The translations under genes and the position numbers were made by a program. From contig OZ176050.1 in assembly GCA_964247055.1 (NCBI GenBank), positions 14,880,001 through 14,944,000 of the forward strand: a stretch of 64,000 bases of DNA, in the 5' to 3' direction. Shown piece by piece: positions 21,621 through 58,790 of this stretch. Below the pieces are notes generated by a model. That model did no database searches. It saw only the letters and a list, made by a program, of their open reading frames with translations, and had not been told where the DNA came from. Source of the DNA: Paragordius varius (Eukaryota > Animalia > Nematomorpha). The first letter of the stretch is position 1. Each line of letters starts with the position of its first letter.

Positions 21621-24600
21621 CTAGCGTAAACAAAAAAGGGACAATAAGGTGATCCACATATGTGGAATATTTCGAAACATTATTTAATAGCTATGATCTC
21701 ATATTTTAAAACGGTGCTTTCATAGTAAATTAATGTTTACTTGGGGAAAAAATAGATTTAAAAAAATTATTTTTATGGACTTTGATTTTTTAAAATAGAT
21801 ACTTCTTACTCAGCAGCAATCATCAAAGAAACGCTTGACTAAAATTTTTATTTTTTAACAGGAAATACGTGGAATCCTTATTGAATTTTTGTCTCATAGC
21901 TTGGGCACAAAAATACAATCAAAAAATTATTTTTGTGGACTTTGTTTTTTGAAAAAAATGGCATTTTAGGGCGGGAGCGGGTAAAAAGAGCGCCTAAATC
22001 AAAATAACGAGACGACTATGTTCGGCGCGATCAAAAATAGGTAAACAAAAATCATATTTGAAATTGAATGGTCCACATTCTGCGGAAAATTGTCTCAACC
22101 TGTTTTTTAAACGGGGTAGGCCCGAACTGGGGGACTAATTCCAAAAAACGCTGAGGCTATTGCCGGGACATTTATTTATGATTATATTTTTTCGATATTT
22201 GCATTTGATTGGGTTCCCCGGTTTTTCGGAAACAGATCACAAAGTTACATAAAAAATCAGTTTTTAGCGGGTAGCTCCCTACCCAGCAGCTATCATCAAA
22301 GAAACTCTTGACTAAAATTTTTGCCTTTAAACGGGGAATACGTGGAATCCTGATTGAATTTTTACAGTCTCATACCTTGGGCAAAAAAATACAATCAAAA
22401 AATTATTTTTGTGGACTTTGTTTTTTGAAAAAAATGGCATTTTACGGGGGGAGGGGGTAAAAATAGCGCCTAAATCAAAATAGCGAGAAGACTATGTTCG
22501 GCGCGATCAAAAATAGGTAAACTAAAATCATATTTGAAATTGAATGGTCCAACAGATTCTGCGGAAAGTATCAAACTGTTTTTTACACGGGGTAGGCCCG
22601 AACTGGGGGCCTAATTCAAAAAAAGGACGAAGCTATTGTCGGGGCATTGACTGATGATTATATTTTTTCGATGTTTGGATTTGAATGGGTCTACCGGTTT
22701 TCCGGTCCAGATCACAAAGCCAGCATTTTCCATTTTTATAAATATATAGATTACCATAAATAATGTTTTATTATCCATATATTTTGTAACATCCTATACA
22801 TATGATAGATACTCCTTACTCAGCAGCTATCATCAAAGAAACGCTTGACTCAAATTTTTGCCTTTTAACAGGAAATACGTGGACTCCTTATTGAATTTTT
22901 ACAGTCTCATACCTTGGGCACAAAAATACAATCAAAAAATTATTTTTGTGGACTTTGTTTTTTTGAAAAAAATGGCATTTTACGGGGGGAGCGGGTAAAA
23001 AGAGCGCCTAAATCAAAATAGCGAGACGACTATGTTCGGCGCGATCAAAAATAGGTAAACAAAAATCATATTTGAAATTAAATGGTCCAACAGATTCTGC
23101 GGAAAATTGTCACTGTTTTTTACACGGGGTAGGCCCGAACTGGGGGACTAATTCCAAAAAACGGCGAGGCTATTGCCGGGACATTTATTTATGATTATAT
23201 TTTATCGATATTTGCATTTGATTGGGTTCCCCGGTTTTCTGGAAACAAATCACAAAGTTACATGAAAAATCAGTTTTTAGCGGGTAGCTCCTTACCCAGC
23301 AGCTATCATTAAAGAAATTCTTGACTAAAATTTTTGTCTTTTAACAGGGAATACGTGGAATCCATATTGAATTTTGACGGTCTCATACCTAGGGCGAAAA
23401 ATAGATTTAAAAAATTATTTTTGTGGACTTTGTTTTTTGAAAAAAATGACATTTTACAGGGAAAGCGGGTAAAAAGAGAAATCAAAATAGCGACACGACT
23501 ATGTTCGGCGCGATCAAAAATAGGTAAACAAAAATCATATTTGAAATTGAATGGTCCACATTCTGCGGAAAATTGTCTCAACCTGTTTTTTACACGGGGT
23601 AGGTTCGAACTGGGGGCCAAATTCCAAAAAAAGGCGAGGCTTTGTAAGACATTTATTTATGATTTTATTTTTTCGATATTTGGATTTGATTGATTTCACC
23701 GGTTTTCCGGAAACAAATCCAAAAAGTTACATGAAAAATCAGTTTTTAGCGGGTAGCCCCTTACTCAGCAGCAATCATCAAAGAAACGCTTGACTAAAAT
23801 TTTTGCCTTTTAACAGGAAATACTTGGAATCCTTATTAAATTTTTACAGTCTCATACCTAGGGCGAAAAATAGATTTAAAAAATTATTTTTGTGGACTTT
23901 GTTTTTTGAAAAAAATGACATTTTACGGGGGGAGCGGGTAAAAAGAGCGCCTAAATCAAAATAGCGAGACGACTATGTTCGGCGCGATCAAAAATAGGTA
24001 AACAAAAATCATATTTGAAATTGAATGGTCCAACAGATTCTGCGGAAAATTGTCTCAACCTGTTTTTTACAAGTGGTAGGCCCGAACTGGAAGCCTAATT
24101 CCAAAAAAAGACGAGGCTATTGTAAGACATTTATTTATGATTATATTTTTTCGATATTTGGATTTGAATTGGGTTCACCGGTTTTCAAGAAACAAATCAC
24201 AAAGTTATATAAAAAATCAGTTTTTAGCGGGTAACTCCTTACCCAGCAGCTATCATCAAAGAAACTCTTGATTAAAATTTTTGTCTTTTAACAGGGAAAA
24301 CGTGGAATCCACACTGAATTTTTACGGTCTCACTAGGGCGAAAAATAGATTTAAAAAATTATATTTTTAGACTTTGTTTTTTGAAAAAAATGACATTTTA
24401 CGGGGGGAGCGGGTAAAAAGAGCGCCCAAATCAAAATAGCGAGAAGACTATGTTCGGCGCGATCAAAAATAGGTAAACAAAAATCATATTTGAAATTGAA
24501 TGGTCCAATAGATTCTGCGGAAACTAGTCTAACCTGTTTTTTATACAGGGTAGGCCCGAACTGGGGGCCAAATTCCAAAAAAAGGCGAGGCTTTGTAAGA

Positions 24601-27600
24601 CATTTATTTATGATTATATTTTTTCGATATTTGGATTTCATTGGGTTCACCGGTTTTCCGGAAACAAATCACAAAGTTACATTAAAAATCAGATTTTACC
24701 GGGTAGCTCCTTACCCAGCAGCTATCATCAAAGAAATTCTTGACTAAAATTTTTGCCTTTAAACGGGGAATACGTGGAATCCTGATTGAATTTTTACAGT
24801 CTCATACCTTGGGCAAAAAAATACAATCAAAAAATTCTTTTTGTGGACTTTGTTTTTTGAAAAAAATGGCATTTTACGGGGGGAGGGGGTAAAAATAGCG
24901 CCTAAATCAAAATAGCGAGACGACTATGTTCGGCGCGATCAAAAATAGGTAAACAAAAATCATATTTGAAATTGAATGGTCCACCTTCTGCGGAAAATTG
25001 TCTCAACCTGTTTTTTACACGGGGTAGGCCCGAACTGGGGGACTAATTCCAAAAAACGGCGAGGCTATTGCCGGGACATTTATTTATGATTATATTTTTT
25101 CGATATTTGCATTTGATTGGGTTCACCGGTTTTCCGGAAACAAATCACAAAGTTACATGAAAAATCAGTTTTTAGCGGGTAGCCCCTTACCCAGCTGCTA
25201 TCATCAAAGAAACTCTTGACTAAAATTTTTTCCTTTTAACAGGAAATACGTGGAATCCTTATTGAATTTTTACAGTCTCATACCTTGGGCACAAAAATAC
25301 AATCAAAAAATTATTTTTGTGGACTTTGTTTTTTGGAAAAAAATGGCATTTTACGGGGAGAGCGGGTAAAAAGAGCGCCTAAATCAAAATAGCGAGACGA
25401 CTATGTTCGGCGCGATCAAAAATAGGTAAACAAAAATATATTTGAAATTAAATGGTCCAACAGATTCTGCGGAAAATTGTCAAACCTGTTTTTTACACGG
25501 GGTAGGCCCGAACTGGGGGCCAAATTCCAAAAAAAGGCGAGGCTTTGTACGACATTTATTTATGATTATATTTTATCGATATTTGCATTTGATTGGGTTC
25601 CCCAGTTTTTCGGAAACAGATCACAAAGTTACATAAAAAATCAGTTTTTAGCGGGTAGCTCCCTACCCAGCAGCTATCATCAAAGAAACTCTTGACTAAA
25701 ATTTTTGCCTTTAAACAGGGAATAGTGGAATCTTTATTGAATTATTACAGTCTCATACCTTGGGCAAAAAAATACAATCAAAAAATTATTTTTGTGGACT
25801 TTGTTTTTTGAAAAAAATGGCATTTTACGGGGGGAGGGGGTAAAAATAGCGCCTAAATCAAAATAGCGAGACGACTATGTTCGGCGCGATCAAAAATAGG
25901 TAAACAAAAATCATATTTGAAATTGAATAGTCCATCTTCTGCGGAAAATTGTCTCAACCTGTTTTTTACACGGGGTAGGCCCGAACTGGGGGACTAATTC
26001 CAAAAAACGGCGAGGCTATTGCCGGGACATTTATTTATGATTATATTTTTTCGATATTTGCATTTGATTGGGTTCACCGGTTTTCCGGAAACAAATCACA
26101 AAGTTACATGAAAAATCAGTTTTTAGCGGGTAGCCCCTTACCCAGCTGCTATCATCAAAGAAACTCTTGACTAAAATTTTTGCCTTTAAACGGGGAATAC
26201 GTGGAATCCTGATTGAATTTTTACAGTCTCATACCTTGGGCAAAAAAATACAATCAAAAAATTCTTTTTGTGGACTTTGTTTTTTGAAAAAAATGGCATT
26301 TTACGGGGGGAGGGGGTAAAAATAGCGCCTAAATCAAAATAGCGAGAAGACTATGTTCGGCGCGATCAAAAATAGGTAAACTAAAATCATATTTGAAATT
26401 GAATGGTCCAACAGATTCTGCGGAAAGTATCAACCTGTTTTTTACACGGGGTAGGCCCGAACTGGGGGCCTAATTCAAAAAAAGGACGAAGCTATTGTCG
26501 GGGCATTGACTAATGATTATATTTTTTCGATGTTTGGATTTGAATGGGTCTACCGGTTTTCCGGTCCAGATCACAAAGCCAGCATTTTCCATTTTTATAA
26601 ATATATAGATTACCATAAATAATGTTTTATTATCCATATATTTTGTAACATCCTATACATATGATAGATACTCCTTACTCAGCAGCTATCATCAAAGAAA
26701 CGCTTGACTCAAATTTTTGCCTTTTAACAGGAAATACGTGGAATCCTGATTGAATTTTTACAGTCTCATACCTTGGGCAAAAAAATACAATCAAAAAATT
26801 CTTTTTGTGGACTTTGTTTTTTGAAAAAAATGGCATTTTACGGGGGGAGGGGGTAAAAATAGCGCCTAAATCAAAATAGCGAGAAGACTATGTTCGGCGC
26901 GATCAAAAATAGGTAATCTAAAATCATATTTGAAATTGAATGGTCCAACAGATTCTGCGGAAAGTATCAACCTGTTTTTTACACGGGGTAGGCCCGAACT
27001 GGGGGCCTAATTCAAAAAAAGGACGAAGCTATTGTCGGGGCATTGACTAATGATTATTTTTTTCGATGTTTGGATTTGAATGGGTCTACCGGTTTTCCGG
27101 TCCAGATCACAAAGCCAGCATTTTCCATTTTTATAAATATGTAGATTACCATAAATAATGTTTTATTATCCATATATTTTGTAACATCCTATACATATGA
27201 TAGATACTCCTTACTCAGCAGCTATCATCAAAGAAACGCTTGACTCAAATTTTTGCCTTTTAACAGGAAATACGTGGAATCCTTATTGAATTTTTACAGT
27301 CTCATACCTTGGGCACAAAAATACAATCAAAAAATTATTTTTGTGGACTTTGTTTTTTTGAAAAAAATGGCATTTTACGGGGGGAGCGGGTAAAAAGAGC
27401 GCCTAAATCAAAATAGCGAGACGACTATGTTCGGCGCGATCAAAAATAGGTAAACAAAAATCATATTTGAAATTAAATGGTACAACAGATTCTGCGGAAA
27501 ATTGTCAAACCTGTTTTTTACACGGGGTAAGCCCGAACTGGGGGACAAATTCCAAAAAACGGCGAGGCTATTGCCGGGACATTTATTTATGATTATATTT

Positions 27601-30600
27601 TTTCGATATTTGCATTTGATTGTGTTCACCGGTTTTCCGGAAACAAATCACAAAATTACATGAAAAATCAGTTTTTAGCGGGTAGCCCCTTACCCAGCTG
27701 CTATCATCAAAGAAACTCTCTAAAATTTTTGCCTTTAAACGGGGAATACGTGGAATCCTGATTGAATTTTTACAGTCTCATACCTTGGGCAAAAAAATAC
27801 AATCAAAAAATTCTTTTTGTGGACTTTGTTTTTTGAAAAAAATGGCATTTTACGGGGGGAGGGGGTAAAAATAGCGCCTAAATCAAAATAGCGAGAAGAC
27901 TATGTTCGCGCGATCAAAAATAGGTAAACTAAAATCATATTTGAAATTGAATGGTCCACCTTCTGCGGAAAATTGTCTCAACCTGTTTTTTACACGGGGT
28001 AGGCCCGAACTGGGGGACTAATTCCAAAAAACGGCGAGGCTATTGCCGGGACATTTATTTATGATTATATTTTTTCGATATTTGCATTTGATTGGGTTCA
28101 CCGGTTTTCCGGAAACAAATCACAAAATTACATGAAAAATCAGTTTTTAGCGGGTAGCCCCTTACCCAGCTGCTATCATCAAAGAAACTCTCTAAAATTT
28201 TTGCCTTTAAACGGGGAATACGTGGAATCCTGATTGAATTTTTACAGTCTCATACCTTGGGCAAAAAAATACAATCAAAAAATTATTTTTGTGGACTTTG
28301 TTTTTTGAAAAAAATGGCATTTTACGGGGGGAGGGGGTAAAAATAGCGCCTAAATCAAAATAGCGAGACGACTATGTTCGGCGCGATCAAAAATAGGTAA
28401 ACAAAAATCATATTTGAAATTGAATGGTCCACCTTCTGCGGAAAATTGTCTCAACCTGTTTTTTACACGGGGTAGGCCCGAACTGGGGGACTAATTCCAA
28501 AAAACGGCGAGGCTATTGCCGGGACATTTATTTATGATTATATTTTTTCGATATTTGCATTTGATTGGGTTCACCGGTTTTCCGGAAACAAATCACAAAA
28601 TTACATGAAAAATCAGTTTTTAGCGGTAGCCCCTTACCCAGCTGCTATCATCAAAGAAACTCTCTAAAATTTTTGCCTTTAAACGGGGAATACGTGGAAT
28701 CCTGATTGAATTTTTACAGTCTCATACCTTGGGCAAAAAAATACAATCAAAAAATTATTTTTGTGGACTTTGTTTTTTGAAAAAAATGGCATTTTACGGG
28801 GGGAGGGGGTAAAAATAGCGCCTAAATCAAAATAGCGAGACGACTATGTTCGGCGCGATCAAAAATAGGTAAACAAAAATCATATTTGAAATTGAATGGT
28901 CCACCTTCTGCGGAAAATTGTCTCAACCTGTTTTTTACACGGGGTAGGCCCGAACTGGGGGACTAATTCCAAAAAACGGCGAGGCTATTGCCGGGACATT
29001 TATTTATGATTATATTTTTTCGATATTTGCATTTGATTGGGTTCACCGGTTTTCCGGAAACAAATCACAAAGTTACATGAAAAATCAGTTTTTAGCGGGT
29101 AGCCCCTTACCCAGCTGCTATCATCAAAGAAACTCTTGACTAAAATTTTTGCCTTTAAACGGGGAATACGTGGAATCCTGATTGAATTTTTACAGTCTCA
29201 TACCTTGGGCAAAAAAATACAATCAAAAAATTCTTTTTGTGGACTTTGTTTTTTGAAAAAAATGGCATTTTACGGGGGGAGGGGGTAAAAATAGCGCCTA
29301 AATCAAAATAGCGAGAAGACTATGTTCGGCGCGATCAAAAATAGGTAAACTAAAATCATATTTGAAATTGAATGGTCCAACAGATTCTGCGGAAAGTATC
29401 AACCTGTTTTTTACACGGGGTAGGCCCGAACTGGGGGCCTAATTCAAAAAAAGGACGAAGCTATTGTCGGGGCATTGACTAATGATTATATTTTTTCGAT
29501 GTTTGGATTTGAATGGGTCTACCGGTTTTCCGGTCCAGATCACAAAGCCAGCATTTTCCATTTTTATAAATATATAGATTACCATAAATAATGTTTTATT
29601 ATCCATATATTTTGTAACATCCTATACATATGATAGATACTCCTTACTCAGCAGCTATCATCAAAGAAACGCTTGACTCAAATTTTTGCCTTTTAACAGG
29701 AAATACGTGGACTCCTTATTGAATTTTTACAGTCTCATACCTTGGGCACAAAAATACAATCAAAAAATTATTTTTGTGGACTTTGTTTTTTGGAAAAAAA
29801 TGGCATTTTACGGGGAGAGCGGGTAAAAATAGCGCCTAAATCAAAATAGCGAGACGACTATGTTCGGCGTGATCAAAAATAGGTAAACAAAAATCATATT
29901 TGAAATTAAATGGTCCAACAGATTCTGCGGAAAATTGTCAAACCTGTTTTTTACACGGGGTAGGCCCGAACTGGGGGCCAAATTCCAAAAAAAGGCGAGG
30001 CTTTGTACGACATTTATTTATGATTATATTTTATCGATATTTGCATTTGATTGGGTTCCCCAGTTTTTCGGAAACAGATCACAAAGTTACATAAAAAATC
30101 AGTTTTTAGCGGGTAGCTCCCTACCCAGCAGCTATCATCAAAGAAACTCTTGACTAAAATTTTTGCCTTTAAACAGGGAATAGTGGAATCTTTATTGAAT
30201 TATTACAGTCTCATACCTTGGGCAAAAAATACAATCAAAAAATTATTTTTGTGGACTTTGTTTTTTGAAAAAAATGGCATTTTACGGGGGGAGGGGGTAA
30301 AAATAGCGCCTAAATCAAAATAGCGAGACGACTATGTTCGGCGCGATCAAAAATAGGTAAACAAAAATCATATTTGAAATTGAATGGTCCACCTTCTGCG
30401 GAAAATTGTCTCAACCTGTTTTTTACACGGGGTAGGCCCGAACTGGGGGACTAATTCCAAAAAACGGCGAGGCTATTGCCGGGACATTTATTTATGATTA
30501 TATTTTTTCGATATTTGCATTTGATTGGGTTCACCGGTTTTCCGGAAACAAATCACAAAGTTACATGAAAAATCAGTTTTTAGCGGGTAGCCCCTTACCC

Positions 30601-33600
30601 AGCTGCTATCATCAAAGAAACTCTTGACTAAAATTTTTGCCTTTAAACGGGGAATACGTGGAATCCTGATTGAATTTTTACAGTCTCATACCTTGGGCAA
30701 AAAAATACAATCAAAAAATTCTTTTTGTGGACTTTGTTTTTTTGAAAAAAATGGCATTTTACGGGGGGAGGGGGTAAAAATAGCGCCTAAATCAAAATAG
30801 CGAGAAGACTATGTTCGGCGCGATCAAAAATAGGTAAACTAAAATCATATTTGAAATTGAATGGTCCAACAGATTCTGCGGAAAGTATCAACCTGTTTTT
30901 TACACGGGGTAGGCCCGAACTGGGGGCCTAATTCAAAAAAAGGACGAAGCTATTGTCGGGGCATTGACTAATGATTATTTTTTTCGATGTTTGGATTTGA
31001 ATGGGTCTACCGGTTTTCCGGTCCAGATCACAAAGCCAGCATTTTCCATTTTTATAAATATATAGATTACCATAAATAATGTTTTATTATCCATATATTT
31101 TGTAACATCCTATACATATGATAGATACTCCTTACTCAGCAGCTATCATCAAAGAAACGCTTGACTCAAATTTTTGCCTTTTAACAGGAAATACGTGGAA
31201 TCCTTATTGAATTTTTACAGTCTCATACCTTGGGCACAAAAATACAATCAAAAAATTATTTTTGTGGACTTTGTTTTTTTGAAAAAAATGGCATTTTACG
31301 GGGGGAGCGGGTAAAAAGAGCGCCTAAATCAAAATAGCGAGACGACTATGTTCGGCGCGATCAAAAATAGGTAAACAAAAATCATATTTGAAATTAAATG
31401 GTACAACAGATTCTGCGGAAAATTGTCAAACCTGTTTTTTACACGGGGTAAGCCCGAACTGGGGGACAAATTCCAAAAAACGGCGAGGCTATTGCCGGGA
31501 CATTTATTTATGATTATATTTTTTCGATATTTGCATTTGATTGTGTTCACCGGTTTTCCGGAAACAAATCACAAAATTACATGAAAAATCAGTTTTTAGC
31601 GGGTAGCCCCTTACCCAGCTGCTATCATCAAAGAAACTCTCTAAAATTTTTGCCTTTAAACGGGGAATACGTGGAATCCTGATTGAATTTTTACAGTCTC
31701 ATACCTTGGGCGAAAAATAGATTTAAAAAATTATTTTTGTGGACTTTGTTTTTTGAAAAAAATGACATTTTACGGGGGGAGCGGGTAAAAAGAGCGCCTA
31801 AATCAAAATAGCGAGACGACTATGTTCGGCGCGATCAAAAATAGGTAAACAAAAATCATATTTGAAATTAAATGGTACAACAGATTCTGCGGAAAATTGT
31901 CAAACCTGTTTTTTACACGGGGTAAGCCCGAACTGGGGGACAAATTCCAAAAAACGGCGAGGCTATTGCCGGGACATTTATTTATGATTATATTTTTTCG
32001 ATATTTGCATTTGATTGGGTTCACCGGTTTTCCGGAAACAAATCACAAAATTACATGAAAAATCAGTTTTTAGCGGGTGGCCCCTTACCCAGCTGCTATC
32101 ATCAAAGAAACTCTCTAAAATTTTTGCCTTTAAACGGGGAATACGTGGAATCCTGATTGAATTTTTACAGTCTCATACCTTGGGCAAAAAAATACAATCA
32201 AAAAATTATTTTTGTGGACTTTGTTTTTTGAAAAAAATGGCATTTTACGGGGGGAGGGGGTAAAAATAGCGCCTAAATCAAAATAGCGAGAAGACTATGT
32301 TCGGCGCGATCAAAAATAGGTAAACTAAAATCATATTTGAAATTGAATGGTCCAACAGATTCTGCGGAAAGTATCAACCTGTTTTTTACACGGGGTAGGC
32401 CCCAACTGGGGGCCTAATTCAAAAAAAGGACGAAGCTATTGTCGGGGCATTGACTAATGATTATATTTTTTCGATGTTTGGATTTGAATGGGTCTACCGG
32501 TTTTCTGGAAACAAATCACAAAGTTACATGAAAAATCAGTTTTTAGCGGGTAGCTCCTTACCCAGCACCTATCATCAAAGAAATTCTTGACTAAAATTTT
32601 TGTCTTTTAACAGGGAATACGTGGAATCCATATTGAATTTTGACGGTCTCATACCTAGGGCGAAAAATAGATTTAAAAAATTATTTTTGTGGACTTTGTT
32701 TTTTGAAAAAAATGACATTTTACGGGGGGAGCAGGTAAAAAGAGCGCCTAAATCAAAATAGCGAGACGACTATGTTCGGCGCGATCAAAAATAGGTAAAC
32801 AAAAATCATATTTGAAATTGAATGGTCCAATAGAATCTGCAGAAAATTGTCTCAACCTGTTTTTTACACGGGGGGCCTGAACTGAGGGCCTAATTCCAAA
32901 AAAAGGCGAGGCTATTGTAAGACATTTATTTATGATTATATTTTTTCGATATTTGGATTTCATTGGGTTCACCGGTTTCCCGGAATCAAATCACAAAGTT
33001 ACATTAAAAATCAGATTTTAGCGGGTAGCTCCTTACCCAGCCCTTATCATCAAAGAAACTCTTCTAAAATTTTTGTCTATTAAGAAGGAATACGTGGAAT
33101 CCATATTGAATTTTGACGGTCTCATACCTAGGGCGAAAAATAGATTTAAAAAATTATTTTTGTAGACTTTGTTTTTTGAAAAAAATGACATTTTAGAGGG
33201 AAAGCGGGTAAAAAGAGAAATCAAAATAGCGACACGACTATGTTCGGCGCGATCAAAAATAGGTAAACAAAAATCATATTTGAAATTGAATGGTCCACAT
33301 TCTGCGGAAAATTGTCTCAACCTGTTTTTTACACGGGGTAGGTTCGAACTGGGGGACAAATTCCAAAAAAAGGCGAGGCTTTGTAAGACATTTATTTATG
33401 ATTTTATTTTTTCGATATTTGGATTTGATTGGGTTCACCGGTTTTCCGACAAATCCAAAAAGTTACATGAAAAATCAGTTTTTAGCGGGTAGCCCCTTAC
33501 TCAGCAGCAATCATCAAAGAAACGCTTGACTAAAATTTTTGCCTTTTAACAGGAAATACTTGGAATCCTTATTAAATTTTTACAGTCTCATACCTAGGGC

Positions 33601-36600
33601 GAAAAATAGATTTAAAAAATTATTTTTGTGGACTTTGTTTTTTGAAAAAAATGACATTTTACGGGGGGAGCGGGTAAAAAGAGCGCCTAAATCAAAATAG
33701 CGAGACGACTATGTTCGGCGCGATCAAAAATAGGTAAACAAAAATCATATTTGAAATTGAATGGTCCAACAGATTCTGCGGAAAATTGTCTCAACCTGTT
33801 TTTTACAAGTGGTAGGCCCGAACTGGAAGCCTAATTCCAAAAAAAGACGAGGCTATTGTAAGACATTTATTTATGATTATATTTTTTCGATATTTGGATT
33901 TGAATTGGGTTCACCGGTTTTCAAGACACAAATCACAAAGTTACATAAAAAATCAGTTTTTAGCGGGTAACTCCTTACCCAGCAGCTATCATCAAAGAAA
34001 CTCTTGATTAAAATTTTTGTCTTTTAACAGGGAAAACGTGGAATCCACACTGAATTTTTACGGTCTCATACCTAGGGCGAAAAATAGATTTAAAAAATTA
34101 TTTTTTTAGACTTTGTTTTTTGAAAAAAATGACATTTTACGGGGGGAGCGGGTAAAATGAGCGCCCAAATCAAAATAGCGAGACGACTATGTTCGGCGCG
34201 ATCAAAAATAGGTAAACAAAAATCATATTTGTAATTGAATGGTCCAATAGATTCTGCGGAAACTAGTCAAACCTGTTTTTTACACAGGGTAGGCCCGAAC
34301 TGGGGGCCAAATTCCAAAAAAAGGCGAGGCTTTGTAAGACATTTATTTATGATTATATTTTTTCGATATTTGGATTTCATTGGGTTCACCGGTTTTCCGG
34401 TAACAAATCACAAAGTTACATTAAAAATCAGATTTTACCGGGTAGCTCCTTACCCAGCAGCTATCATCAAAGAAATTCTTGACTAAAATTTTTGTCTTTT
34501 AACAGGGAATACGTGGAATCCATATTGAATTTTGACGGTCTCATACCTAGGGCGAAAAATAGATTTAAAAAATTATTTTTGTGGACTTTGTTTTTTGAAA
34601 AAAATGACATTTTACGGGGGGAGCAGGTAAAAAGAGCGCCTAAATCAAAATAGCGAGACGACTATGTTCGGCGCGATCAAAAATAGGTAAACAAAAATCA
34701 TATTTGAAATTGAATGGTCCAACAGATTCTGCGGAAAATTGTCAAACTTGTTTTTTTACACGGGGTAGGCCCGAACTGGGGGCCAAATTCCAAAAAAAGG
34801 CGAGGCTTTGTAAGACATTTATTTATGATTATATTTTTTCGATATTTGGATTTGATTGGGTTCACCGGTTTTCCGGAAACAAATCCAAAAAGTTACATGA
34901 AAAATCAGTTTTTAGCGGGTAGCCCCTTACTCAGCAGCAATCATCAAAGAAATTCTTGACTAAAATTTTTGTCTTTTAACAGGGAATACGTGGAATCCAT
35001 ATTGAATTTTGACGGTCTCATACCTAGGGCGAAAAATAGATTTAAAAAATTATTTTTGTGGACTTTGTTTTTTGAAAAAAATGACATTTTACGGGGGGAG
35101 CAGGTAAAAAGAGCGCCTAAATCAAAATAGCGAGACGACTATGTTCGGCGCGATCAAAAATAGGTAAACAAAAATCATATTTGAAATTGAATGGTCCAAC
35201 AGATTCTGCGGAAAATTGTCAAACCTGTTTTTTTACACGGGGTAGGCCCGAACTGGGGGCCAAATTCCAAAAAAAGGCGAGGCTTTGTAAGACATTTATT
35301 TATGATTATATTTTTTCGATATTTGGATTTGATTGGGTTCACCGGTTTTCCGGAAACAAATCCAAAAAGTTACATGAAAAATCAGTTTTCAGCGGGTAGC
35401 CCCTTACTCAGCAGCAATCATCAAAGAAACGCTTGACTAAAATATTTGCCTTTTAACAGGAAATACTTGGAATCCTTATTAAATTTTTACAGTCTCATAC
35501 CTAGGGCGAAAAATAGATATAAAAAATTATTTTTGTGGACTTTGTTTTTTGAAAAAAATGACATTTTACGGGGGGAGCAGGTAAAAAGAGCGCCTTAATC
35601 AAAATAGCGAGACGACTATGTTCGGCGCGATCAAAAATAGGTAAACAAAAATCATATTTGAAATTGAATGGTCCAATAGATTCTGCAGAAAATTGTCTCA
35701 ACCTGTTTTTTACACTGGGGGCCTGAACTGGGGGCCTAATTCCAAAAACAGGCGAGGCTATTGTAAGACATTTATTTATGATTATATTTTTTCGATATTT
35801 GGATTTCATTGGGTTCACCGGTTTTCCGGAAACAAATCACAAAGTTACATTAAAAATCAGATTTTAGCGGGTAGCTCCTTACCCAGCAGCTATCATCAAA
35901 GAAACTCTTCTAAAATTTTTGTCTATTAAGAAGGAATACGTGGAATCCATATTGAATTTTGACGGTCTCATACCTAGGGCGAAAAATAGATTTAAAAAAT
36001 TATTTTTGTAGACTTTGTTTTTTGAAAAAAATGACATTTTACAGGGAAAGCGGGTAAAAAGAGAAATCAAAATAGCGACACGACTATGTTCGGCGCGATC
36101 AAAAATAGGTAAACAAAAATCATATTTGAAATTGAATGGTCCACATTCTGCGGAAAATTGTCTCAACCTGTTTTTTACACGGGGTAGGTTCGAACTGGGG
36201 GCCAAATTCCAAAAAAAGGCGAGGCTTTGTAAGACATTTATTTATGATTTTATTTTTTCGATATTTGGATTTGATTGGGTTCACCGGTTTTCCGACAAAT
36301 CCAAAAAGTTACATGAAAAATCAGTTTTTAGCGGGTAGCCCCTTACTCAGCAGCAATCATCAAAGAAACGCTTGACTAAAATTTTTGCATTTTAACAGGA
36401 AATACTTGGAATCCTTATTAAATTTTTACAGTCTCATACCTAGGGCGAAAAATAGATTTAAAAAATTATTTTTGTGGACTTTGTTTTTTGAAAAAAATGA
36501 CATTTTACGGGGGGAGCGGGTAAAAAGAGCGCCTAAATCAAAATAGCGAGACGACTATGTTCGGCGCGATCAAAAATAGGTAAACAAAAATCATATTTGA

Positions 36601-39600
36601 AATTGAATGGTCCAACAGATTCTGCGGAAAATTGTCTCAACCTGTTTTTTACAAGTGGTAGGCCCGAACTGGAAGCCTAATTCCAAAAAAAGACGAGGCT
36701 ATTGTAAGACATTTATTTATGATTATATTTTTTCGATATTTGGATTTGAATTGGGTTCACCGGTTTTCCGGAAACAAATCACAAAGTTACATTAAAAATC
36801 AGATTTTACCGGGTAGCTCCTTACCCAGCAGCTATCATCAAAGAAATTCTTGACTAAAATTTTTGTCTTTTAACAGGGAATACGTGGAATCCATATTGAA
36901 TTTTGACGGTCTCATACCTAGGGCGAAAAATAGATTTAAAAAATTATTTTTGTGGACTTTGTTTTTTTGAAAAAAATGACATTTTACGGGGGGAGCTGGT
37001 AAAAAGAGCGCCTAAATCAAAATAGCGAGACGACTATGTTCGGCGCGATCAAAAATAGGTAAACAAAAATCATATTTGAAATTGAATGGTCCATCAGATT
37101 CTGCGGAAAATTGTCAAACCTGTTCTTTACACGGGGTAGGCCCGAACTGGGGGCCAAATTCCAAAAAAAGGCGAGTCTTTGTAAGACATTTATTTATGAT
37201 TATATTTTTTCGATATTTAGATTTCATTGGGTTCACCGGTTTTCCGGAAACAAATCACAAAGTTACATGAAAAATCAGTTTTTAGTGGGTAGCTCCTTAC
37301 CCAGCAGCTATCATCAAAGAAACTCTTGACTAAAATTTTTGTCTTTTAACAGGGAATACGTGGAATCCATACTGAATTTTTACAGTCTCATACCTTGGGC
37401 ACAAATCCAAAAATTATTTTAGTGGACTTTGTTTTTTGAAAAAAATGGCATTTTACGGGGGGAGCGGGTAAAAAGAGCGCCTAAATCAAAATAGCGAGAC
37501 GACTATGTTCGGCGCGATCAAAAATAGGTAAACAAAAATCATATTTTAATTGAATGGTCCAACAGATTCTGCGGAAAATTGTCAAACCTGTTTTTTTACA
37601 CGGGGTATGCCCGAACTGGGGGCCAAATTCCAAAAAAAGGCGAGTCTTTGTAAGACATTTATTTATGATTATATTTTTTCGATATTTGGATTTGATTGGG
37701 TTCACCTGTTTTCCGGAAACAAATCACAAAGTTGCATGAAAAATCAGTTTTTAGCGGGTAGCTCCTTACCCAGCAGCTATCATCAAAGAAATTCTTGACT
37801 AAAATTTTTGTCTTTTAACAGGGAATACGTAGAATCCATATTGAATTTTGACGGTCTCATACCTAGGGCGAAAAATAGATTTAAAAAATTATTTTTGTGG
37901 ACTTTGTTTTTTGAAAAAAATGACATTTTACGGGGGGAGCAGGTAAAAAGAGCGCCTAAATCAAAATAGCGAGACGACTATGTTCGGCGCGATCAAAAAT
38001 AGGTAAACAAAAATCATATTTGAAATTGAATGGTCCAACAGATTCTGCGGAAAATTGTCAAACCTGTTTTTTACACGTGGTAGGCCCGAACTGGGGGCCA
38101 AATTCCAAAAAAAGGCGAGGCTTTGTAAGACATTTATTTATGATTATATTTTTTCGATATTTGGATTTCATTGGGTTCACCGGTTTTCATTAAACAAATC
38201 ACAAAGTTACATGAAAAATCAGTTTTTAGCGGGTAGCTCCTTACCCAGCAGCTATCATCAAAGAAATTCTTGACTAAAATTTTTGTCTTTTAACAGGGAA
38301 TACGTGGAATCCATATTGAATTTTGACGGTCTCATACCTAGGGCGAAAAATAGATTTGAAAAATTATTTTTGTGGACTTTGTTTTTTTGAAAAAAATGAC
38401 ATTTTACGGGGGGAGCAGGTAAAAAGAGCGCCTAAATCAAAATAGCGAGACGACTATGTTCGGCGCGATCAAAAATAGGTAAACAAAAATCATATTTGAA
38501 ATTGAATGGTCCAACAGATTCTGCGGAAAATTGTCAAACCTGTTTTTTACACGTGGTAGGCCCGAACTGGGGGCCAAATTCCAAAAAAAGGCGAGGCTTT
38601 GTAAGACCTTTATTTATGATTATATTTTTTCGATATTTGGATTTCATTGGGTTCACCGGTTTTCATTAAACAAATCACAAAGTTACATGAAAAATCAGTT
38701 TTTAGCGGGTAGCTCCTTACCCAGCAGCTATCATCAAAGAAATTCTTGACTAAAATTTTTGTCTTTTAACAGGGAATACGTGGAATCCATATTGAATTTT
38801 GACGGTCTCATACCTAGGGCGAAAAATAGATTTAAAAAATTATTTTTGTGGACTTTGTTTTTTTGAAAAAAATGACATTTTACGGGGGGAGCAGGTAAAA
38901 AGAGCGCCTAAATCAAAATAGCGAGACGACTATGTTCGGCGCGATCAAAAATAGGTAAACAAAAATCATATTTGAAATTGAATGGTCCAACAGATTCTGC
39001 GGAAAATTGTCTCAACCTGTTTTTTACACGTGGTAGGCCCGAACTGGGGGCCAAATTCCAAAAAAAGGCGAGGCTTTGTAAGACATTTATTTATGATTAT
39101 ATTTTTTCGATATTTGGATTTGATTGGGTTCACCGGTTTTCCGGAAACAAATCACATTACATGAAAAATCAGTTTTTAGCGGGTAGCTCATTACCCAGCA
39201 GCTATCATCAAAGAAACTCTTGACAAAAATTTTTGTCTTTTAACAGGGAAAACGTGGAATCCATACTGAATTTTTACGGTCTCATACCTAGGGCGAAAAA
39301 TAGATTTAAAAAATTATTTTTGTAGACTTTGTTTTTTGAAAAAAATAACATTTTACGGGGGGAGCGGGTAAAAAGAGCGCCCAAATCAAAATAGCGAGAC
39401 GACTATGTTCGGCGCCATCAAAAATAGGTAAACAAAAATCATATTTGAAATTGCATGGTCCAACAGATTCTGCGGAAAATTGTCTCAACCTGTTTTTTAC
39501 ACGGGGTAGGCCCGAACTGGAGGCCAAATTCCAAAAAAGGCGAGTCTTTGTAAGACATTTATTTATGATTATATTTTTTCGATATTTGGATTTCATTGGG

Positions 39601-42600
39601 TTCACCGGTTTTCCGGAAACAAATCACAAAGTTACATGAAAAATTAGTTTTTAGCGGGTAGCTTTTTACCCAGCAGCTATCATCAAAGAAATTCTTGACT
39701 AAAATTTTTGTTTTTTAACAGGGAATACGTGGAATCCATATTGAATTTTGACGGTCTCATACCTAGGGAGAAAAATAGTTTTAAAAAATTATTTTTGTGG
39801 ACTTTGTTTTTTGAAAAAAATGACATTTTACAGGGGAAGCGGGTAAAAAGAGCGCCTAAATCAAAATAGCGACACGACTATGTTCGGCGCGATCAAAAAT
39901 AGGTAAACAAAAATCATATTTGAAATTGAATGGTCCAACAGATTCTGCGGAAAATTGTCAAACCTGTTTTTTACACGGGGGGCCCGAACTGGGGGCCAAA
40001 TTCCAAAAAAGGCGAGTCTTTGTAAGACATTTATTATGATTATATTTTTTCGATATTTGGATTTCATTGGGTTCACCGGTTTTCCGGAAACAAATCACAA
40101 AGTTACATGAAAAATCAGTTTTTAGCGGGTAGCTTTTTACCCAGCAGCTATCATCAAAGAAATTCTTGACTAAAATTTTTGTTTTTTAACAGGGAATACG
40201 TGGAATCCATATTGAATTTTGACGGTCTCATACCTAGGGCGAAAAATAGTTTTAAAAAATTATTTTTGTGGACTTTGTTTTTTGAAAAAAATGACATTTT
40301 ACGGAGGGAGCAGGTAAAAAGAGCGCCTAAATCAAAATAGCGAGACGACTATGTTCGGCGCGATCAAAAATAGGTAAACAAAAATCATATTTGAAATTGA
40401 ATGGTCCAACAGATTCTGCGGAAAATTGTCTCAACCTGTTTTTTACATGGGGGGCCCGAACTGGGGGCCTAATTCCAAAAAAAGGCGAGGCTATTGTAAG
40501 ACATTTATTTATGATATTTTTTCGATATTTGGATTTGATTGGGTTCACCGGTTTACCGGAAACAAATCACATTACATGAAAAATCAGTTTTTAGCGGGTA
40601 GCTCTTTACCCAGCAGCTATCATCAAAGAAACTCTTGACTAAAATTTTTGTCTTTTAACAGGGAAAACGTGGAATCCATACTGAATTTTTACGGTCTCAT
40701 ACCTAGGGCGAAAAATAGATTTAAAAAAATTATTTTTGTGGACTTTGTTTTTTTGAAAAAAATGGCATTTTACGGGGGGAGGGGGTAAAAATAGCGCCTA
40801 AATCAAAATAGCGAGACGACTATGTTCGGCGCGATCAAAAATAGGTAAACAAAAATCATATTTGAAATTAAATGGTCCAACAGATTCTGCGGAAAATTGT
40901 CAAACCTGTTTTTTACACGGGGTAGGCCCGAACTGGGGGACTAATTCCAAAAAACGGCCAGGCTATTGCCGGGACATTAATTTATGATTATATTTTTTCG
41001 ATATTCGCATTTGATTGGGTTCACCGGTTTTCCGGAAACAAACCACAAAGTTACATGAAAAATCAGTTTTTAGCGGGTAGCCCCTTACCCAGCTGCTATC
41101 ATCAAAGAAACTCTTGACTAAAATTTTTGCCTTTAAACGGGGAATACGTGGAATCCTGATTGAATTTTTACAGTCTCATACCTTGGGCAAAAAAATACAA
41201 TCAAAAAATTCTTTTTGTGGACTTTGTTTTTTGAAAAAAATGGCATTTTACGGGGGGAGGGGGTAAAAATAGCGCCTAAATCAAAATAGCGAGAAGACTA
41301 TGTTCGGCGCGATCAAAAATAGGTAAACTAAAATCATATTTGAAATTGAATGGTCCAACAGATTCTGCGGAAAGTATCAACCTGTTTTTTACACGGGGTA
41401 GGCCCGAACTGGGGGCCAAATTCCAAAAAAAGGCGAGGCTTTGTAAGACATTTATTTATGATTATATTTTTTCGATATTTGGATTTCATTGGGTTCACCG
41501 GTTTTCATTAAACAAATCACAAAGTTACATGAAAAATCAGTTTTTAGCGGGTAGCTCCTTACCCAGCAGCTATCATCAAAGAAATTCTTGACTAAAATTT
41601 TTGTCTTTTAACAGGGAATACGTGGAATCCATATTGAATTTTGACGGTCTCATACCTAGGGCGAAAAATGGTTTTAAAAAATTATTTTTGTGGACTTTGT
41701 TTTTGGAAAAAAATGACATTTTACAGGGGAAGCGGGTAAAAAGAGCGCCTAAATCAAAATAGCGACACGACTATGTTCGGCGCGATCAAAAATAGGTAAA
41801 CAAAAATCATATTTGAAATTGAATGGTCCAACAGATTCTGCGGAAAATTGTCAAACCTGTTTTTTACACGGGGGGCCCGAACTGGGGGCCAAATTCCAAA
41901 AAAAGGCGAGGCTTTGTAAGACATTTATTTATGATTATATTTTTTCGATATTTGGATTTCATTGGGTTCACCGGTTTTCATTAAACAAATCACAAAGTTA
42001 CATGAAAAATCAGTTTTTAGCGGGTAGCTCCTTACCCAGCAGCTATCATCAAAGAAATTCTTGACAAAAATTTTTGTCTTTTAACAGGGAAAACGTGGAA
42101 TCCATACTGAATTTTTACGGTCTCATACCTAGGGCGAAAAATAGATTTAAAAAATTATTTTTGTAGACTTTGTTTTTTGAAAAAAATAACATTTTACGGG
42201 GGGAGCGGGTAAAAAGAGCGCCCAAATCAAAATAGCGAGACGACTATGTTCGGGGCGATCAAAAATAGGTAAACAAAAATCATATTTGAAATTGAATGGT
42301 CCAACAGATTCTGCGGAAAATTGTCAAACCTGTTTTTTACACGGGGGGCCCGAACTGGGGGCCAAATTCCAAAAAAAGGCGAGGCTTTGTAAGACATTTA
42401 TTTATGATTATATTTTTTCGATATTTGGATTTCATTGGGTTCACCGGTTTTCATTAAACAAATCACAAAGTTACATGAAAAATCAGTTTTTAGCGGGTAG
42501 CTCCTTACCCAGCAGCTATCATCAAAGAAATTCTTGACTAAAATTTTTGTCTTTTAACAGGGAATACGTGGAATCCATATTGAATTTTGACGGTCTCATA

Positions 42601-45600
42601 CCTAGGGCGAAAAATAGATTTAAAAAATTATTTTTGTGGACTTTGTTTTTTTGAAAAAAATGACATTTTACGGGGGGAGCAGGTAAAAAGAGCGCCTAAA
42701 TCAAAATAGCGAGACGACTATGTTCGGCGCGATCAAAAATAGGTAAACAAAAATCATATTTGAAATTGAATGGTCCAACAGATTCTGCTGAAAATTGTCT
42801 CAACCTGTTTTTTACACGGGGGGCCCGAACTGGGGCCCTAATTCCAAAAAAAGACGAGGCTATTGTAAGACATTTATTTATGATTATATTTTTTCGATAT
42901 TTGGATTTGATTGGGTTCACCGGTTTTCCGGAAACAAATCATATTACATGAAAAATCAGTTTTTAGCGGGTAGCTCATTACCCAGCAGCTATCATCAAAG
43001 AAACTCTTGACAAAAATTTTTGTCTTTTAACAGGGAAAACGTGGAATCCATACTGAATTTTTACGGTCTCATACCTAGGGCGAAAAATAGATTTAAAAAA
43101 TTATTTTTGTAAACTTTGTTTTTTGAAAAAAATAACATTTTACGGGGGGAGCGGGTAAAAAGAGCGCCCAAATCAAAATAGCGAGACGACTATGTTCGGC
43201 GCCATCAAAAATAGGTAAACAAAAATCATATTTGAAATTGCACGGTCCAACAGATTCTGCGGAAAATTGTCAAACCTGTTTTTTACACGGGGTAGGCCCG
43301 AACTGGAGGCCAAATTCTAAAAAAGGCGAGTCTTTGTATGACATTTATTTATGATTATATTTTTTCGATATTTGGATTTCATTGGGTTCACCGGTTTTCC
43401 GGAAACAAATCACAAAGTTACATGAAAAATTAGTTTTTAGCGGGTAGCTTTTTACCCAGCAGCTATCATCAAAGAAATTCTTGACTAAAATTTTTGTTTT
43501 TTAACAGGGAATACGTGGAATCCATATTGAATTTTGACGGTCTCATACCTAGGGCGAAAAATAGTTTTAAAAAATTATTTTTGTGGACTTTGTTTTTTGA
43601 AAAAAATGACATTTTACAGGGGAAGCGGGTAAAAAGAGCGCCTAAATCAAAATAGCGACACGACTATGTTCGGCGCGATCAAAAATAGGTAAACAAAAAT
43701 TATATTTGAAATTGAATGGTCCAACAGATTCTGCGGAAAATTGTCAAACCTGTTTTTTACACGGGGTAGGCCCGAACTGGGGGCCAAATTCCAAAAAAGG
43801 CGAGTCTTTGTAAGACATTTATTATGATTATATTTTTTCGATATTTGGATTTCATTGGGTTCACCGGTTTTCCGGAAACAAATCACAAAGTTACATGAAA
43901 AATTAGTTTTTAGCGGGTAGCTTTTTACCCAGCAGCTATCATCAAAGAAATTCTTGACTAAAATTTTTGTTTTTTAACAGGGAATACGTGGAATCCATAT
44001 TGAATTTTGACGGTCTCATACCTAGGGCGAAAAATAGTTTTAAAAAATTATTTTTGTGGACTTTGTTTTTGGAAAAAAATGACATTTTACAGGGGAAGCG
44101 GGTAAAAAGAGCGCCTAAATCAAAATAGCGACACGACTATGTTCGGCGCGATCAAAAATAGGTAAACAAAAATCATATTTGAAATTGAATGGTCCAACAG
44201 ATTCTGCGGAAAATTGTCAAACCTGTTTTTTACACGGGGTAGGCCCGAACTGGGGGCCAAATTCCAAAAAAGGCGAGTCTTTGCAAGACATTTATTATGA
44301 TTATATTTTTTCGATATTTGGATTTCATTGGGTTCACCGGTTTTCCGGAAACAAATCACAAAGTTACATGAAAAATCAGTTTTTAGCGGGTAGCTTTTTA
44401 CCCAGCAGCTATCATCAAAGAAATTCTTGACTAAAATTTTTGTTTTTTAACAGGGAATACGTGGAATCCATATTGAATTTTGACGGTCTCATACCTAGGG
44501 CGAAAGTTTTAAAAAATTATTTTTGTGGACTTTGTTTTTTGAAAAAAATGACATTTTACAGGGGAAGCGGGTAAAAAGAGCGCCTAAATCAAAATAGCGA
44601 CACGACTATGTTCGGCGCGATCAAAAATAGGTAAACAAAAATCATATTTGAAATTGAATGGTCCAACAGATTCTGCGGAAAATTGTCAAACCTGTTTTTT
44701 ACACGGGGTAGGCCCGAACTGGGGGCCAAATTCCAAAAAAGGCGAGTCTTTGTAAGACATTTATTTATGATTATATTTTTTCGATATTTGGATTTCATTG
44801 GGTTCACCGGTTTTCCGGAAACAAATCACAAAGTTACATGAAAAATTAGTTTTTAGCGGGTAGCTTTTTACCCAGCAGCTATCATCAAAGAAATTCTTGA
44901 CTAAAATTTTTTGTTTTTTAACAGGGAATACGTGGAATCCATATTGAATTTTGACGGTCTCATACCTAGGGCGAAAAATAGTTTTAAAAAATTATTTTTG
45001 TGGACTTTGTTTTTGGAAAAAAATGACATTTTACAGGGGAAGCGGGTAAAAAGAGCGCCTAAATCAAAATAGCGACACGACTATGTTCGGCGCGATCAAA
45101 AATAGGTAAACAAAAATCATATTTGAAATTGAATGGTCCAACAGATTCTGCGGAAAATTGTCAAACCTGTTTTTTACACGGGGTAGGCCCGAACTGGGGG
45201 CCAAATTCCAAAAAAAGGCGAGTCTTTGTAAGACATTTATTTATGATTATATTTTTTCGATATTTGGATTTCATTGGGTTCACCGGTTTTCCGGAAACAA
45301 ATCACAAAGTTACATGAAAAATCAGTTTGTAGTGGGTAGCTCCTTACCCAGCAGCTATCATCAAAGAAATTCTTGACTAAAATTTTTGTCTTTTAACAGG
45401 GAATACGTGGAATCCATATTGAATTTTGACGGTCTCATACCTAGGGCGAAAAATAGTTTTGAAAAATTATTTTTGTGGACTTTGTTTTTGGAAAAAAATG
45501 ACATTTTACAGGGGAAGCGGGTAAAAAGAGCGCCTAAATTAAAATAGCGACACGACTATGTTCGGCGCGATCAAAAATAGGTAAACAAAAATCATATTTG

Positions 45601-47269
45601 AAATTGAATGGTCCAACAGATTCTGCGGAAAATTGTCAAACCTGTTTTTTACACGGGGTAGGCCCGAACTGGGGGCCAAATTCCAAAAAAGGCGAGTCTT
45701 TGTAAGACATTTATTTATGATTATATTTTTTCGATATTTGGATTTCATTGGGTTCACCGGTTTTCCGGAAACAAATCACAAAGTTACATGAAAAATTAGT
45801 TTTTAGCGGGTAGCTTTTTACCCAGCAGCTATCATCAAAGAAATTCTTGACTAAAATTTTTGTTTTTTAACAGGGAATACGTGGAATCCATATTGAATTT
45901 TGACGGTCTCATACCTAGGGAGAAAAATAGTTTTAAAAAATTATTTTTGTGGACTTTGTTTTTTGAAAAAAATGACATTTTACAGGGGAAGCGGGTAAAA
46001 AGAGCGCCTAAATCAAAATAGCGACACGACTATGTTCGGCGCGATCAAAAATAGGTAAACAAAAATCATATTTGAAATTGAATGGTCCAACAGATTCTGC
46101 GGAAAATTGTCAAACCTGTTTTTTACACGGGGGGCCCGAACTGGGGGCCAAATTCCAAAAAAGGCGAGTCTTTGTAAGACATTTATTATGATTATATTTT
46201 TTCGATATTTGGATTTCATTGGGTTCACCGGTTTTCCGGAAACAAATCACAAAGTTATAGAAAAATCAGTTTTTAGCGGGTAGCTTTTTACCCAGCAGCT
46301 ATCATCAAAGAAATTCTTGACTAAAATTTTTGTTTTTTAACAGGGAATACGTGGAATCCATATTGAATTTTGACGGTCTCATACCTAGGGCGAAAAATAG
46401 TTTTAAAAAATTATTTTTGTGGACTTTGTTTTTTGAAAAAAATGACATTTTACGGGGGGAGCAGGTAAAAAGAGCGCCTAAATCAAAATAGCGAGACGAC
46501 TATGTTCGGCGCGATCAAAAATAGGTAAACAAAAATCATATTTGAAATTGAATGGTCCAACAGATTCTGCGGAAAATTGTCTCAACCTGTTTTTACACGG
46601 GGGGCCCGAACTGGAGGCCTAATTCCAAAAAAGGGCGAGGCTATTGTCGGGATATTTATTTATGATTATATTTTTTCGATATTTGGATTTGATTGGGTTC
46701 ACCGGTTTTCCGGAAACAGATCACAAAGTTACATAAAAAATCAGTTTTTAGCGGGTAGCTCCTTACTCAGCAGCTATTATCAAAGAAACTCTTGACTAAA
46801 ATTTTTGACTTTTAACAGGGAATACGTGGAATCTATATTGAATTTTTACGGTCTCATACCTAGGGCGAAAAATAGATTTAAAAAATTATTTTTGTGGACT
46901 TTGTTTTTTGAAAAAAATGACATTTTACGGGGGAAGCGGGTAAAAAGAGCGCCTAAATCAAAATAGCGAGACGACTATGTTCGGCGCAATCGAAAATAAG
47001 TAAACAAAAATTATATTTGAGATTGTCCAACACGTTTTCCATAAAATTGTCTCAAAGACATGATTTTTGTGGACTTCTGTTTTCAAAAAAAAACCGTTTT
47101 TCACACGGGGAGGGCCTGAACAGGGGGCCTAATTCAAAAAAAAGGCGAAGCTATTGTCGGGGCATTCATTAATGATTATATTTTTTCGATGTTTGGATTT
47201 GAATGGGTCTACCGCTTTTCCGGTACCAGATCCCAAAGCCAGCATTTTCCATTTTTATAAATATATAGA
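21621..47269 (-). mobile_element. Giant (25.6 kb) non-autonomous Helitron, subfamily B, with an internal satellite expansion
   Basis: The minus strand starts TCTATATATTTATAAAAATGG at 47269 and ends TTTACGCTAG at 21621, inserted between A and T with no TSD. Both termini and the unique 3' region match the 1.8-kb copy at 48508-50303. Confidence 0.85.
21745..47240. repeat. Tandem satellite array, ~53 monomers of ~474 bp; five 538-bp variants carry an internal Helitron 5' end
   Basis: Marker CTATGTTCGGCGCGATC recurs at spacings of 476, 538, 469, 474, 475 and 476 bp and continues to ~46980. Monomers are highly similar, with diagnostic variants. Confidence 0.97.
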
Positions 47270-47621
47270 TATAATTATTATTATTTTTTCTCCAATAACT
47301 CTATTTATTGCAAATTATATTTATCGGTGAGACTACGCTATACCGAAGCGGACAGGGCCTGCAACAAAGTTTCTATATAGTATTTCGAATAACCTATTAT
47401 TTTTTTTCATATTTGTTGGGGTCGTTAAAAAACTCGCAATCATAAATGGGGTCGGCAACTACAAAAGTTTAACAAGCCCTGATATATACCATTTACGATT
47501 TAAATTCACCCTTGAACAATTCAATTCACCCTCAAATAATAATGTTTTTTTTTAATTAAAATAATACTAAAAAAATAATAAACTATGCCATAAAGATATA
47601 TTTCTTATTAACAATGAATTA

Positions 47622-48020
47622 TAAATGACGACATTATGTGGAGATTATACTAATTAGCCTACCATCAATTAGAAGTCATAGTACTTCCTATCAAGCAATT
47701 GGTGGCTTTAAGAAACGAAAAATATAAGATAACAGTCAGTTCTCTGTTTTCTCCATCACCAACTATAATTGGTCTTAAATTTTAAAATACTGTATATATA
47801 CAAACTTCTAATTGACAGTGTTTGCCCGTATTCATTAGGTGTGACTTATGAATCCACAACAACGACGAAACGCGTCTAACACAATGGACACGTGGTAAAC
47901 ACTAAACACTGTCATCTTAAAATTTCGTTTCATAAAAAGCAATTGTTCGATAGGAAGTACTATGACTTCTAATTGCAATGGTAGGCTAATTAGTATAATT
48001 TCCACATAATGCGTTATTAA
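47622..48020. mobile_element. MITE family 3 (~400 bp, ~110-bp TIRs)
   Basis: CATTATGTGGAGATTATACTAATTAGCCTACCAT..AATTAGAAGTCATAGTACTTCCTATC... is inverted at 47908-48013. Confidence 0.75.
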
Positions 48021-58499: not shown

Positions 58500-58790
58500 C
58501 AATAGTTGATTTAAATAATTAGTTTTATAATCACATTGTTAATAATCAGTTGTTCATAAATTGTAATTATTAATCAGTTGTTTTTAATCAGTTGTTTTTA
58601 TTAATTAGTTGTTTTTGTTAATTAGTTGTTTTTATTATTCAGTTGTAATTATTAATCAGTTTTATTTAATTAGTTTTAATTAGTGTTTAAATTAATCAGT
58701 TGTTTAAAGTCAATTGTTTTATTCAATCATGTTTAAAGTCAGTTGTTTTATACAATCAGTTGTTTAAAGTCAGTGTTTTAATTAACACTT
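58500..58790. repeat. Degenerate short tandem repeat (TTAATCAGTTGTT-like units)
   Basis: About 15 imperfect copies of an (A)ATCAGTTGTT / ATTAGTTGTT core. Confidence 0.75.

Follow-up and report, generated by a model that had tools for sequence, protein, structure and literature searches.

How does a Helitron come to span 25,649 bp when another member of its family, 1.2 kb away, spans only 1,796 bp? We addressed this question in a 64-kb window of contig C1 (C1:14,880,001-14,944,000; bare coordinates below count from the first letter of the window), which places the large element ~0.3 Mb from the end of the 15.23-Mb contig. An earlier note on this DNA had described the large element as a young satellite array born inside a Helitron, with the small element as its unexpanded sibling, and had put the difference in length at ~14-fold, in line with the ratio of 14.3 calculated here. 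Our analysis supports growth of the array within its own ends and contradicts both the youth of the family and the sibling relationship. We consider it likely that a short Helitron with two copies of its 5' end motif (two "heads") inserted at an A|T site, grew in place by unequal exchange, and at some stage lost its terminal hairpins through a deletion.

Structure and growth of the large array

The large element lies on the minus strand. Its 5' TC starts at 47269, next to an A at 47270, and its 3' CTAG occupies 21621-21624, next to an A at 21620 that reads as T on the element strand. The termini named in the earlier note (5' TC, 3' CTAG, A|T site) were exact to the base for both copies. Seven paralogs of the repeat that hosts the large copy have its two flanking sequences side by side. 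One of them lies in the window at 57282-58081 and the other six outside it; the alignment leaves a 2-nt ambiguity in an AT run that is taken up below. With the small copy excised, the joined flanks match three copies of a miniature inverted-repeat transposable element (MITE)-like repeat in the window (3609-3813, 18658-18866, and 60911-61116) with neither gap nor duplication. Both copies are therefore true insertions, and the reported absence of a target site duplication held for the small copy and, apart from the 2-nt ambiguity, for the large one.

Phasing of the array on the minus strand against one monomer gave 53 consecutive monomers of 461-539 bp each (21802-47257), close to the ~53 copies of 474 bp described previously and to the output of Tandem Repeats Finder (Table 1). 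Monomer size was 461-479 bp in 46 cases and 511-539 bp in six, the latter owing to extra sequence that they carry. No assembly gaps (runs of N) were seen in the window.

To place these monomers relative to the rest of the family, we built a tree of 151 monomers, in which the 53 of the array were joined by four of the small copy and 94 sampled at more than 30 further loci. Monomers m02-m53 formed one clade with a support of 100 that took in none of these 98, while m01 grouped with heads elsewhere. Because the sample of other loci was small, we also sought a diagnostic 22-mer and found one that 41 of the 52 array monomers contain and that no other sampled monomer matches with up to one mismatch. 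Across the genome, the same tolerance yielded 51 matches, 50 of them in C1:14901989-14926969, which corresponds to the large array, and a single one-mismatch match on contig C5. A 568-bp family member with one unit aligned to the array monomers from nt 31, just after the head, to ~nt 410, reaching the start of the unique 3' region, which shows that the monomer is the Helitron's own body. Taken together, the clade, the private 22-mer, and the one-unit alignment indicate that the length of the large array is most plausibly due to tandem amplification at this locus, between the ends of the element itself, as the earlier note had proposed.

The order of the variants within the array points to how it may have grown. 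Block duplications were read from the monomer identity matrix, since a megablast self-comparison hid most of them. Identity within the array ranged from 83 to 100% (mean 92%); 38 of the 53 monomers had a twin at ≥98% identity inside the array, and three were identical. Near-identical blocks of one to five monomers recurred at offsets of 1, 2, 3, 6, 8, 9, 13, 17, and 20 monomers. Within the run of variant type A, m03, m05-m08, and m16 shared 99.4-99.8% identity with one another, and m48-m50 (23276-24694) were type A copies of m28-m30 in the midst of the type B stretch. The monomers at the edges were the most diverged, with 89% (m01) and 95% (m53) identity to their nearest relative. Such a pattern suggests that unequal exchange or slippage took place again and again over a long period rather than in one burst.

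The element is not the plain monomer array that had been described, as it contains six heads but a single tail. Besides the outer one, five copies of the 34-nt head stand inside the array, each behind the same 63-bp spacer, so that a head is present at 5 of the 52 internal junctions and the numbers of monomers between heads are 34, 3, 5, 1, 8, and 2. The five junctions with a head read spacer|head, and no junction reads CTAG|TC. The module of spacer and head is found across the family, in at least 10 of 30 sampled tail loci and in arrays on contigs C2, C6, and C8; in the arrays on C2 and C8 it builds higher-order repeats of ~2.0 and 3.4 kb. On C1, it recurs with a period of ~1,056 bp, and the listed matches to the head motif include a 15-head array at C1:7.348-7.363 Mb. 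Other sampled arrays of the family likewise have many heads and one tail. Since Helraiser reads through when a terminator is missed, the module likely arose when a complete copy was mobilised along with the 63 bp of flank before it and a truncated copy upstream, and the composite then spread. We also considered whether the plain junction between monomers is a decayed tail|head junction; the resemblance by eye extended to a few bases only.

These features are consistent with the following history. The founder would have been a short, non-autonomous Helitron that inserted between the A and T of an older, related repeat, and it may have had the common two-headed form of the family, which consists of a head, body repeats, the 63-bp spacer, a second head, a body repeat, and the tail. 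The body of the Helitron is itself a repeat unit of ~475 bp, so further units could have been gained when sister chromatids or homologues exchanged out of register, or by replication slippage. Repeated rounds of unequal exchange would have doubled blocks of one to five units, some of which included the spacer and second head, and in this way a founder of a few units and two heads may have become an element of 53 units and six heads. The 3' hairpins, which mark the terminus of a Helitron, were lost at some stage through a deletion of ~60 nt.

The trace of this deletion is visible at the 3' end of the large copy, which lacks ~60 nt comprising the poly-C tract and both hairpins and has only its last 10 nt in common with the small copy and the family end. 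The deletion junction occurs once in the genome and is private to the large copy, so we rejected the idea that the short 3' end marks a subfamily. Folding of this end revealed no terminal hairpin and nothing beyond the upstream palindrome. Median identity to 29 other members was 87.7% for the unique 3' region and 88.9% for the head monomer, and the large copy appears to be old and crippled. In Helraiser, deletion of the hairpin cut transposition to ~9% and raised read-through. Based on that behaviour and on the loss of its hairpins, the large copy is probably poorly mobile or immobile, and it seems to have left no daughters.

The family and its insertion sites

The small copy consists of a head, ~2.5 monomers, the spacer and second head (49688-49786, with the TC of this head mutated to TT), one monomer, the 3' region, weakened hairpins, and CTAG; its 3' fold is weak, at -8.3 kcal/mol (z = -2.1). 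The statement that both copies share termini and 3' region was correct for TC, CTAG, and the identical heads, but the unique 3' regions were only 87% identical over 110 nt, and the large copy lacks the ~60 nt described above. The two copies lie in opposite orientation and in different host repeats. Monomers of the small copy were 72-85% identical to those of the array and clustered with elements on other chromosomes, and the median identity of its 3' region to 29 other members was 94.8%. The small copy is just one more member of the family with a nearby landing site, and the two elements are independent insertions rather than two states of one element. Between them lies a pair of ~55-nt inverted repeats (47640-47695 and 47940-48000) that resembles a small foldback or MITE element.

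The host of the small copy belongs to a MITE-like family of ~650 bp with inverted ends of ~28 nt, each followed by four to five tandem copies of a 21-bp unit. The window holds four copies: 18311-18958, 48066-48507 plus 50304-50454 (the host of the small Helitron), ~3400-3830, and 60812-61120. The large copy sits in a different repeat, present in hundreds of copies, with a head monomer 72-78% like that of the Helitron family; a search of the genome with the left flank returned 841 first-look candidates. One part of this host repeat (21221-21335) resembles sequence just upstream of loci that encode a Rep domain. Its paralog in the window, at 55141-55649 and 57282-58081, contains a 1.6-kb insertion and adjoins a degenerate 17/31-bp tandem repeat at 58539-58785.

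Genome-wide searches for the monomer and termini, as recommended in the earlier note, were carried out in the 110.6-Mb assembly at ≤2 mismatches, with reversed controls giving 0-3 matches. We recovered 3,602 matches to the monomer core, 1,931 to the head (0 for its reversed control), 1,457 to the plain monomer-monomer junction, and 1,042 to the tail, for a ratio of heads to tails of ~1.9 to 1. Based on these counts, the family makes up roughly 1.5% of the assembly, and the large array accounts for ~1.5% of the family monomers. The proposed youth of the family does not fit this abundance, nor the 75-89% identity of monomers at other loci to one monomer of the large array, nor the ~88% identity of the non-array parts of the large copy to other members.

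We sampled ~45 elements at other loci. Members are modular, with a head, from 0.7 to many units, the 3' region, and the tail. Most measure 0.57-1.7 kb, and arrays of 6.1, 6.8, and ≥12.7 kb are also present, so that long head-to-tail arrays of one monomer, as expected of a satellite, occur at several loci in addition to the 25.6 kb here. At one of these loci, L048 (G000:C5:5497245-5500435), a second member starts 3 nt past the CTAG of the first (positions 1691-1695), as separate insertions placed head to tail. On different chromosomes we found six copies of 1.08 kb that share 95-99.2% identity; their flanks are unrelated, and every copy reads A|TC...CTAG|T at its borders.

The ends of the family were defined from 30 tail loci recovered with the 3' region of the small copy. 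These share a poly-C tract, two adjacent hairpins, and 11 nt ending in CTAG, after which similarity stops; a T follows in 28 of the 30. With respect to the CTRR terminus expected of Helitrons, CTAG was found in both copies in the window and in 27 of the 30 tails, with two CTTG and one truncated. The 5' TC was present in both copies and in all sampled members. For the consensus 3' end, the predicted fold is a double hairpin with an energy of -15.3 kcal/mol, compared to -5.9 +/- 1.9 for shuffled sequences (z = -5.0); it stops 11 nt short of the terminus, in line with the ~10-12 nt expected of Helitrons. The family is a canonical, non-autonomous Helitron (Helitron1 type) and not a Helentron, because its target is A|T rather than T|T; membership of the Helentron/Helitron2 (DINE-1-like) group was rejected, as the target was A|T in all cases examined. 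A scan of the small copy found no inverted repeat pairing the head with the 3' region. At two loci with a Rep-domain fragment, a head and head monomer of the family are found on the same strand, 2.2-3.4 kb upstream, which makes an autonomous partner likely.

Alternative explanations and known systems

Several points weigh against growth in place from a short founder. The length of the array is that given by the assembly, and the ~45 sampled elements are few relative to the ~1,000 tails and ~1,900 heads of the family. The empty-site alignment of the large copy includes a 2-nt length difference in the AT run; the site is still A|T, and a 2-nt duplication is formally possible because of this difference. 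No intact Rep/helicase gene was found, with the Rep domain PF14214 detected at ~9 loci, all of them fragments with a longest open reading frame (ORF) of 299 aa. The manner in which units were gained is deduced from the pattern of monomers, and gene conversion could have homogenised an array that was already long on arrival.

The surplus of heads raises a different scenario, in which a circular, terminator-less Helitron was amplified by rolling-circle replication and the product was then integrated as a block, as Xiong, Dooner and Du (2016) modelled it. With six 5' heads to a single 3' tail, the large copy has the layout known from plant arrays, as far as those are described in the accounts cited below. 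The termination hairpins are gone from the large copy, Helraiser read-through rises with hairpin loss, and heads exceed tails across the genome. However, heads stand at so few of the internal junctions, and at such irregular intervals, that no fixed unit emerges. The internal junctions also consist of spacer and head rather than the CTAG|TC of Helitron circles, the private variant has neither a donor nor a daughter, and the nested range of identities together with recent local block duplications contrasts with the equal age expected of one burst. We therefore regard this model as unlikely. Also unlikely in our view is growth driven in place by Rep/helicase. With six start sites and no terminator hairpin, the enzyme would nick the DNA and unwind it from internal heads but be unable to complete the process, and the local re-replication or break-induced repair that this provokes would add units; if true, a transposase would here be expanding a satellite where it lies, and in an animal genome.

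The array could also be wholly or partly a product of repeat mis-assembly, since assemblers tend to fail on stretches of this sort, in which three monomers are identical and several blocks of more than one monomer reach 96-99% identity. Unlike a collapse or over-expansion, though, the monomers differ by 8% on average and their variants are ordered and non-periodic, such that long reads would place them easily, and both ends of the array join unique flanks that match empty sites; an artefact thus appears very unlikely. Very unlikely too is capture, in which the Helitron would have picked up a free satellite that predates it. Helitrons do capture host DNA, including tandem repeats, and the 63-bp spacer resembles captured flank. 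Nonetheless, homology links the monomer to the body of the shortest elements, those of one unit, the family head lies at the 5' edge of every sampled array and the tail in most, and the variant of the large array is found nowhere else.

Growth in place by unequal exchange thus remains our preferred explanation, and it has precedents. The expansion of Helitron- and Helentron-borne tandem repeats into satellite DNA has been published, as have arrays that combine many 5' ends with one 3' end, and the literature on which the earlier note drew is well established. Because internal repeats of Helitrons are already known to seed satellites, the route from transposon to satellite is a familiar one and nothing new in kind is shown here. 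In the many-headed plant arrays (Xiong, Dooner and Du 2016, Plant J 88:1038, as described in PMC12628747 and PMC12001565), truncated Helitron bodies stand in tandem and, as here, several 5' ends go with only one 3' end; unit numbers reach from a few into the hundreds. Relative to those descriptions, most junctions in the large array are headless and its heads are irregularly spaced, the evidence favours unequal exchange in place over rolling-circle amplification before integration, and the setting is an animal-like, AT-rich genome rather than a plant centromere.

Among animal systems, Drosophila DINE-TR1/DINE-1 (Dias et al. 2015; Abdurashitov et al. 2013, PMC3833285) is likewise a non-autonomous rolling-circle element with internal tandem repeats that expand at some loci while most copies stay short. 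It differs in that DINE-1 elements are Helentrons with other ends and another target, and their repeat is a short central module, whereas the unit here is nearly the whole body of a canonical Helitron that inserts at A|T. The Helentron repeats of the Pacific oyster (PMC8268682; reviewed in PMC12628747) are similar as dispersed satellite monomers within rolling-circle elements, in variable arrays, some with element parts on one side only; those arrays are mostly short and belong to a different element group of unrelated sequence. In Xenopus, the minisatellite arrays of Heli2Xen (PMC12001565) also show animal non-autonomous Helitron copies made up largely of internal tandem repeats, but their units are 166 bp in 2-7 repeats of Helitron2 type, and a scale of 53 units is not reported there.

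Against this background, the locus provides a clean, well-bounded case of the body of a mobile element becoming satellite DNA, in which empty sites confirm the boundaries of the insertion on either side and a private variant places the growth at the locus. It adds an animal-like genome to the many-headed Helitron arrays, which the sources cited here report chiefly from plants, and it is a warning that copies lying side by side need not be parent and offspring. It opens no new question, as the family shows the same route at many loci of the same genome.

Coordinates and other features of the window

Table 1. Positions of the two Helitron copies, their parts, and their host repeats within the window
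Feature	Position	Strand	Remarks
Large non-autonomous Helitron copy	21621..47269	-	25,649 bp; 5' TC...3' CTAG; at A|T in older repeat
Outer 5' end motif, head (34 nt)	47236..47269	-	Identical to head of small copy
Tandem array (Tandem Repeats Finder)	22812..47025	-	Period 475, 50.6 copies, 87% matches
Head monomer m01	46747..47257	-	Sole array monomer grouping with head monomers of other loci
Monomers m02-m31	32542..46746	-	Variant type A, without internal heads
Monomers m32-m53	21802..32541	-	Mostly variant type B; contain all five internal heads
Internal spacer and 5' end motif, copy 1	31033..31129	-	Head 31033-31066
Internal spacer and 5' end motif, copy 2	29545..29641	-	Head 29545-29578
Internal spacer and 5' end motif, copy 3	27112..27208	-	Head 27112-27145
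Internal spacer and 5' end motif, copy 4	26576..26672	-	Head 26576-26609
Internal spacer and 5' end motif, copy 5	22717..22813	-	Head 22717-22750
Unique 3' region of large copy	21634..21739	-	87% to that of small copy, ~88% to 29 other members
3' end of large copy, without hairpins	21621..21640	-	~60 nt deleted; junction found once in genome
Small two-headed family member	48508..50303	+	1,796 bp; A|TC at 48507/48508, CTAG|T at 50303/50304
Host of small copy	48066..50454	.	MITE-like; inverted ends of 21-bp subterminal tandem repeats; arms 48066-48148 and 50372-50454
Host of large copy, left part	20487..21620	+	Older related Helitron-like repeat; starts A|TC, similar 5' end and head monomer
Host of large copy, right part	47270..47361	+	
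Host-repeat paralog, uninterrupted at the site (empty site)	57282..58081	+	

A scan of 20000-51000 against Rfam for a ribozyme or other RNA in the monomer gave nothing at the gathering score. The ORFs of the array were rejected as coding; they are chance ORFs. The only Pfam match among the long ORFs of the window, unrelated to the array, was a reverse-transcriptase fragment (RVT_1, E = 1e-8) in an ORF at 12664-13107, within a GC-richer, strongly skewed stretch (12-14 kb), and this ORF is probably a decayed retroelement.

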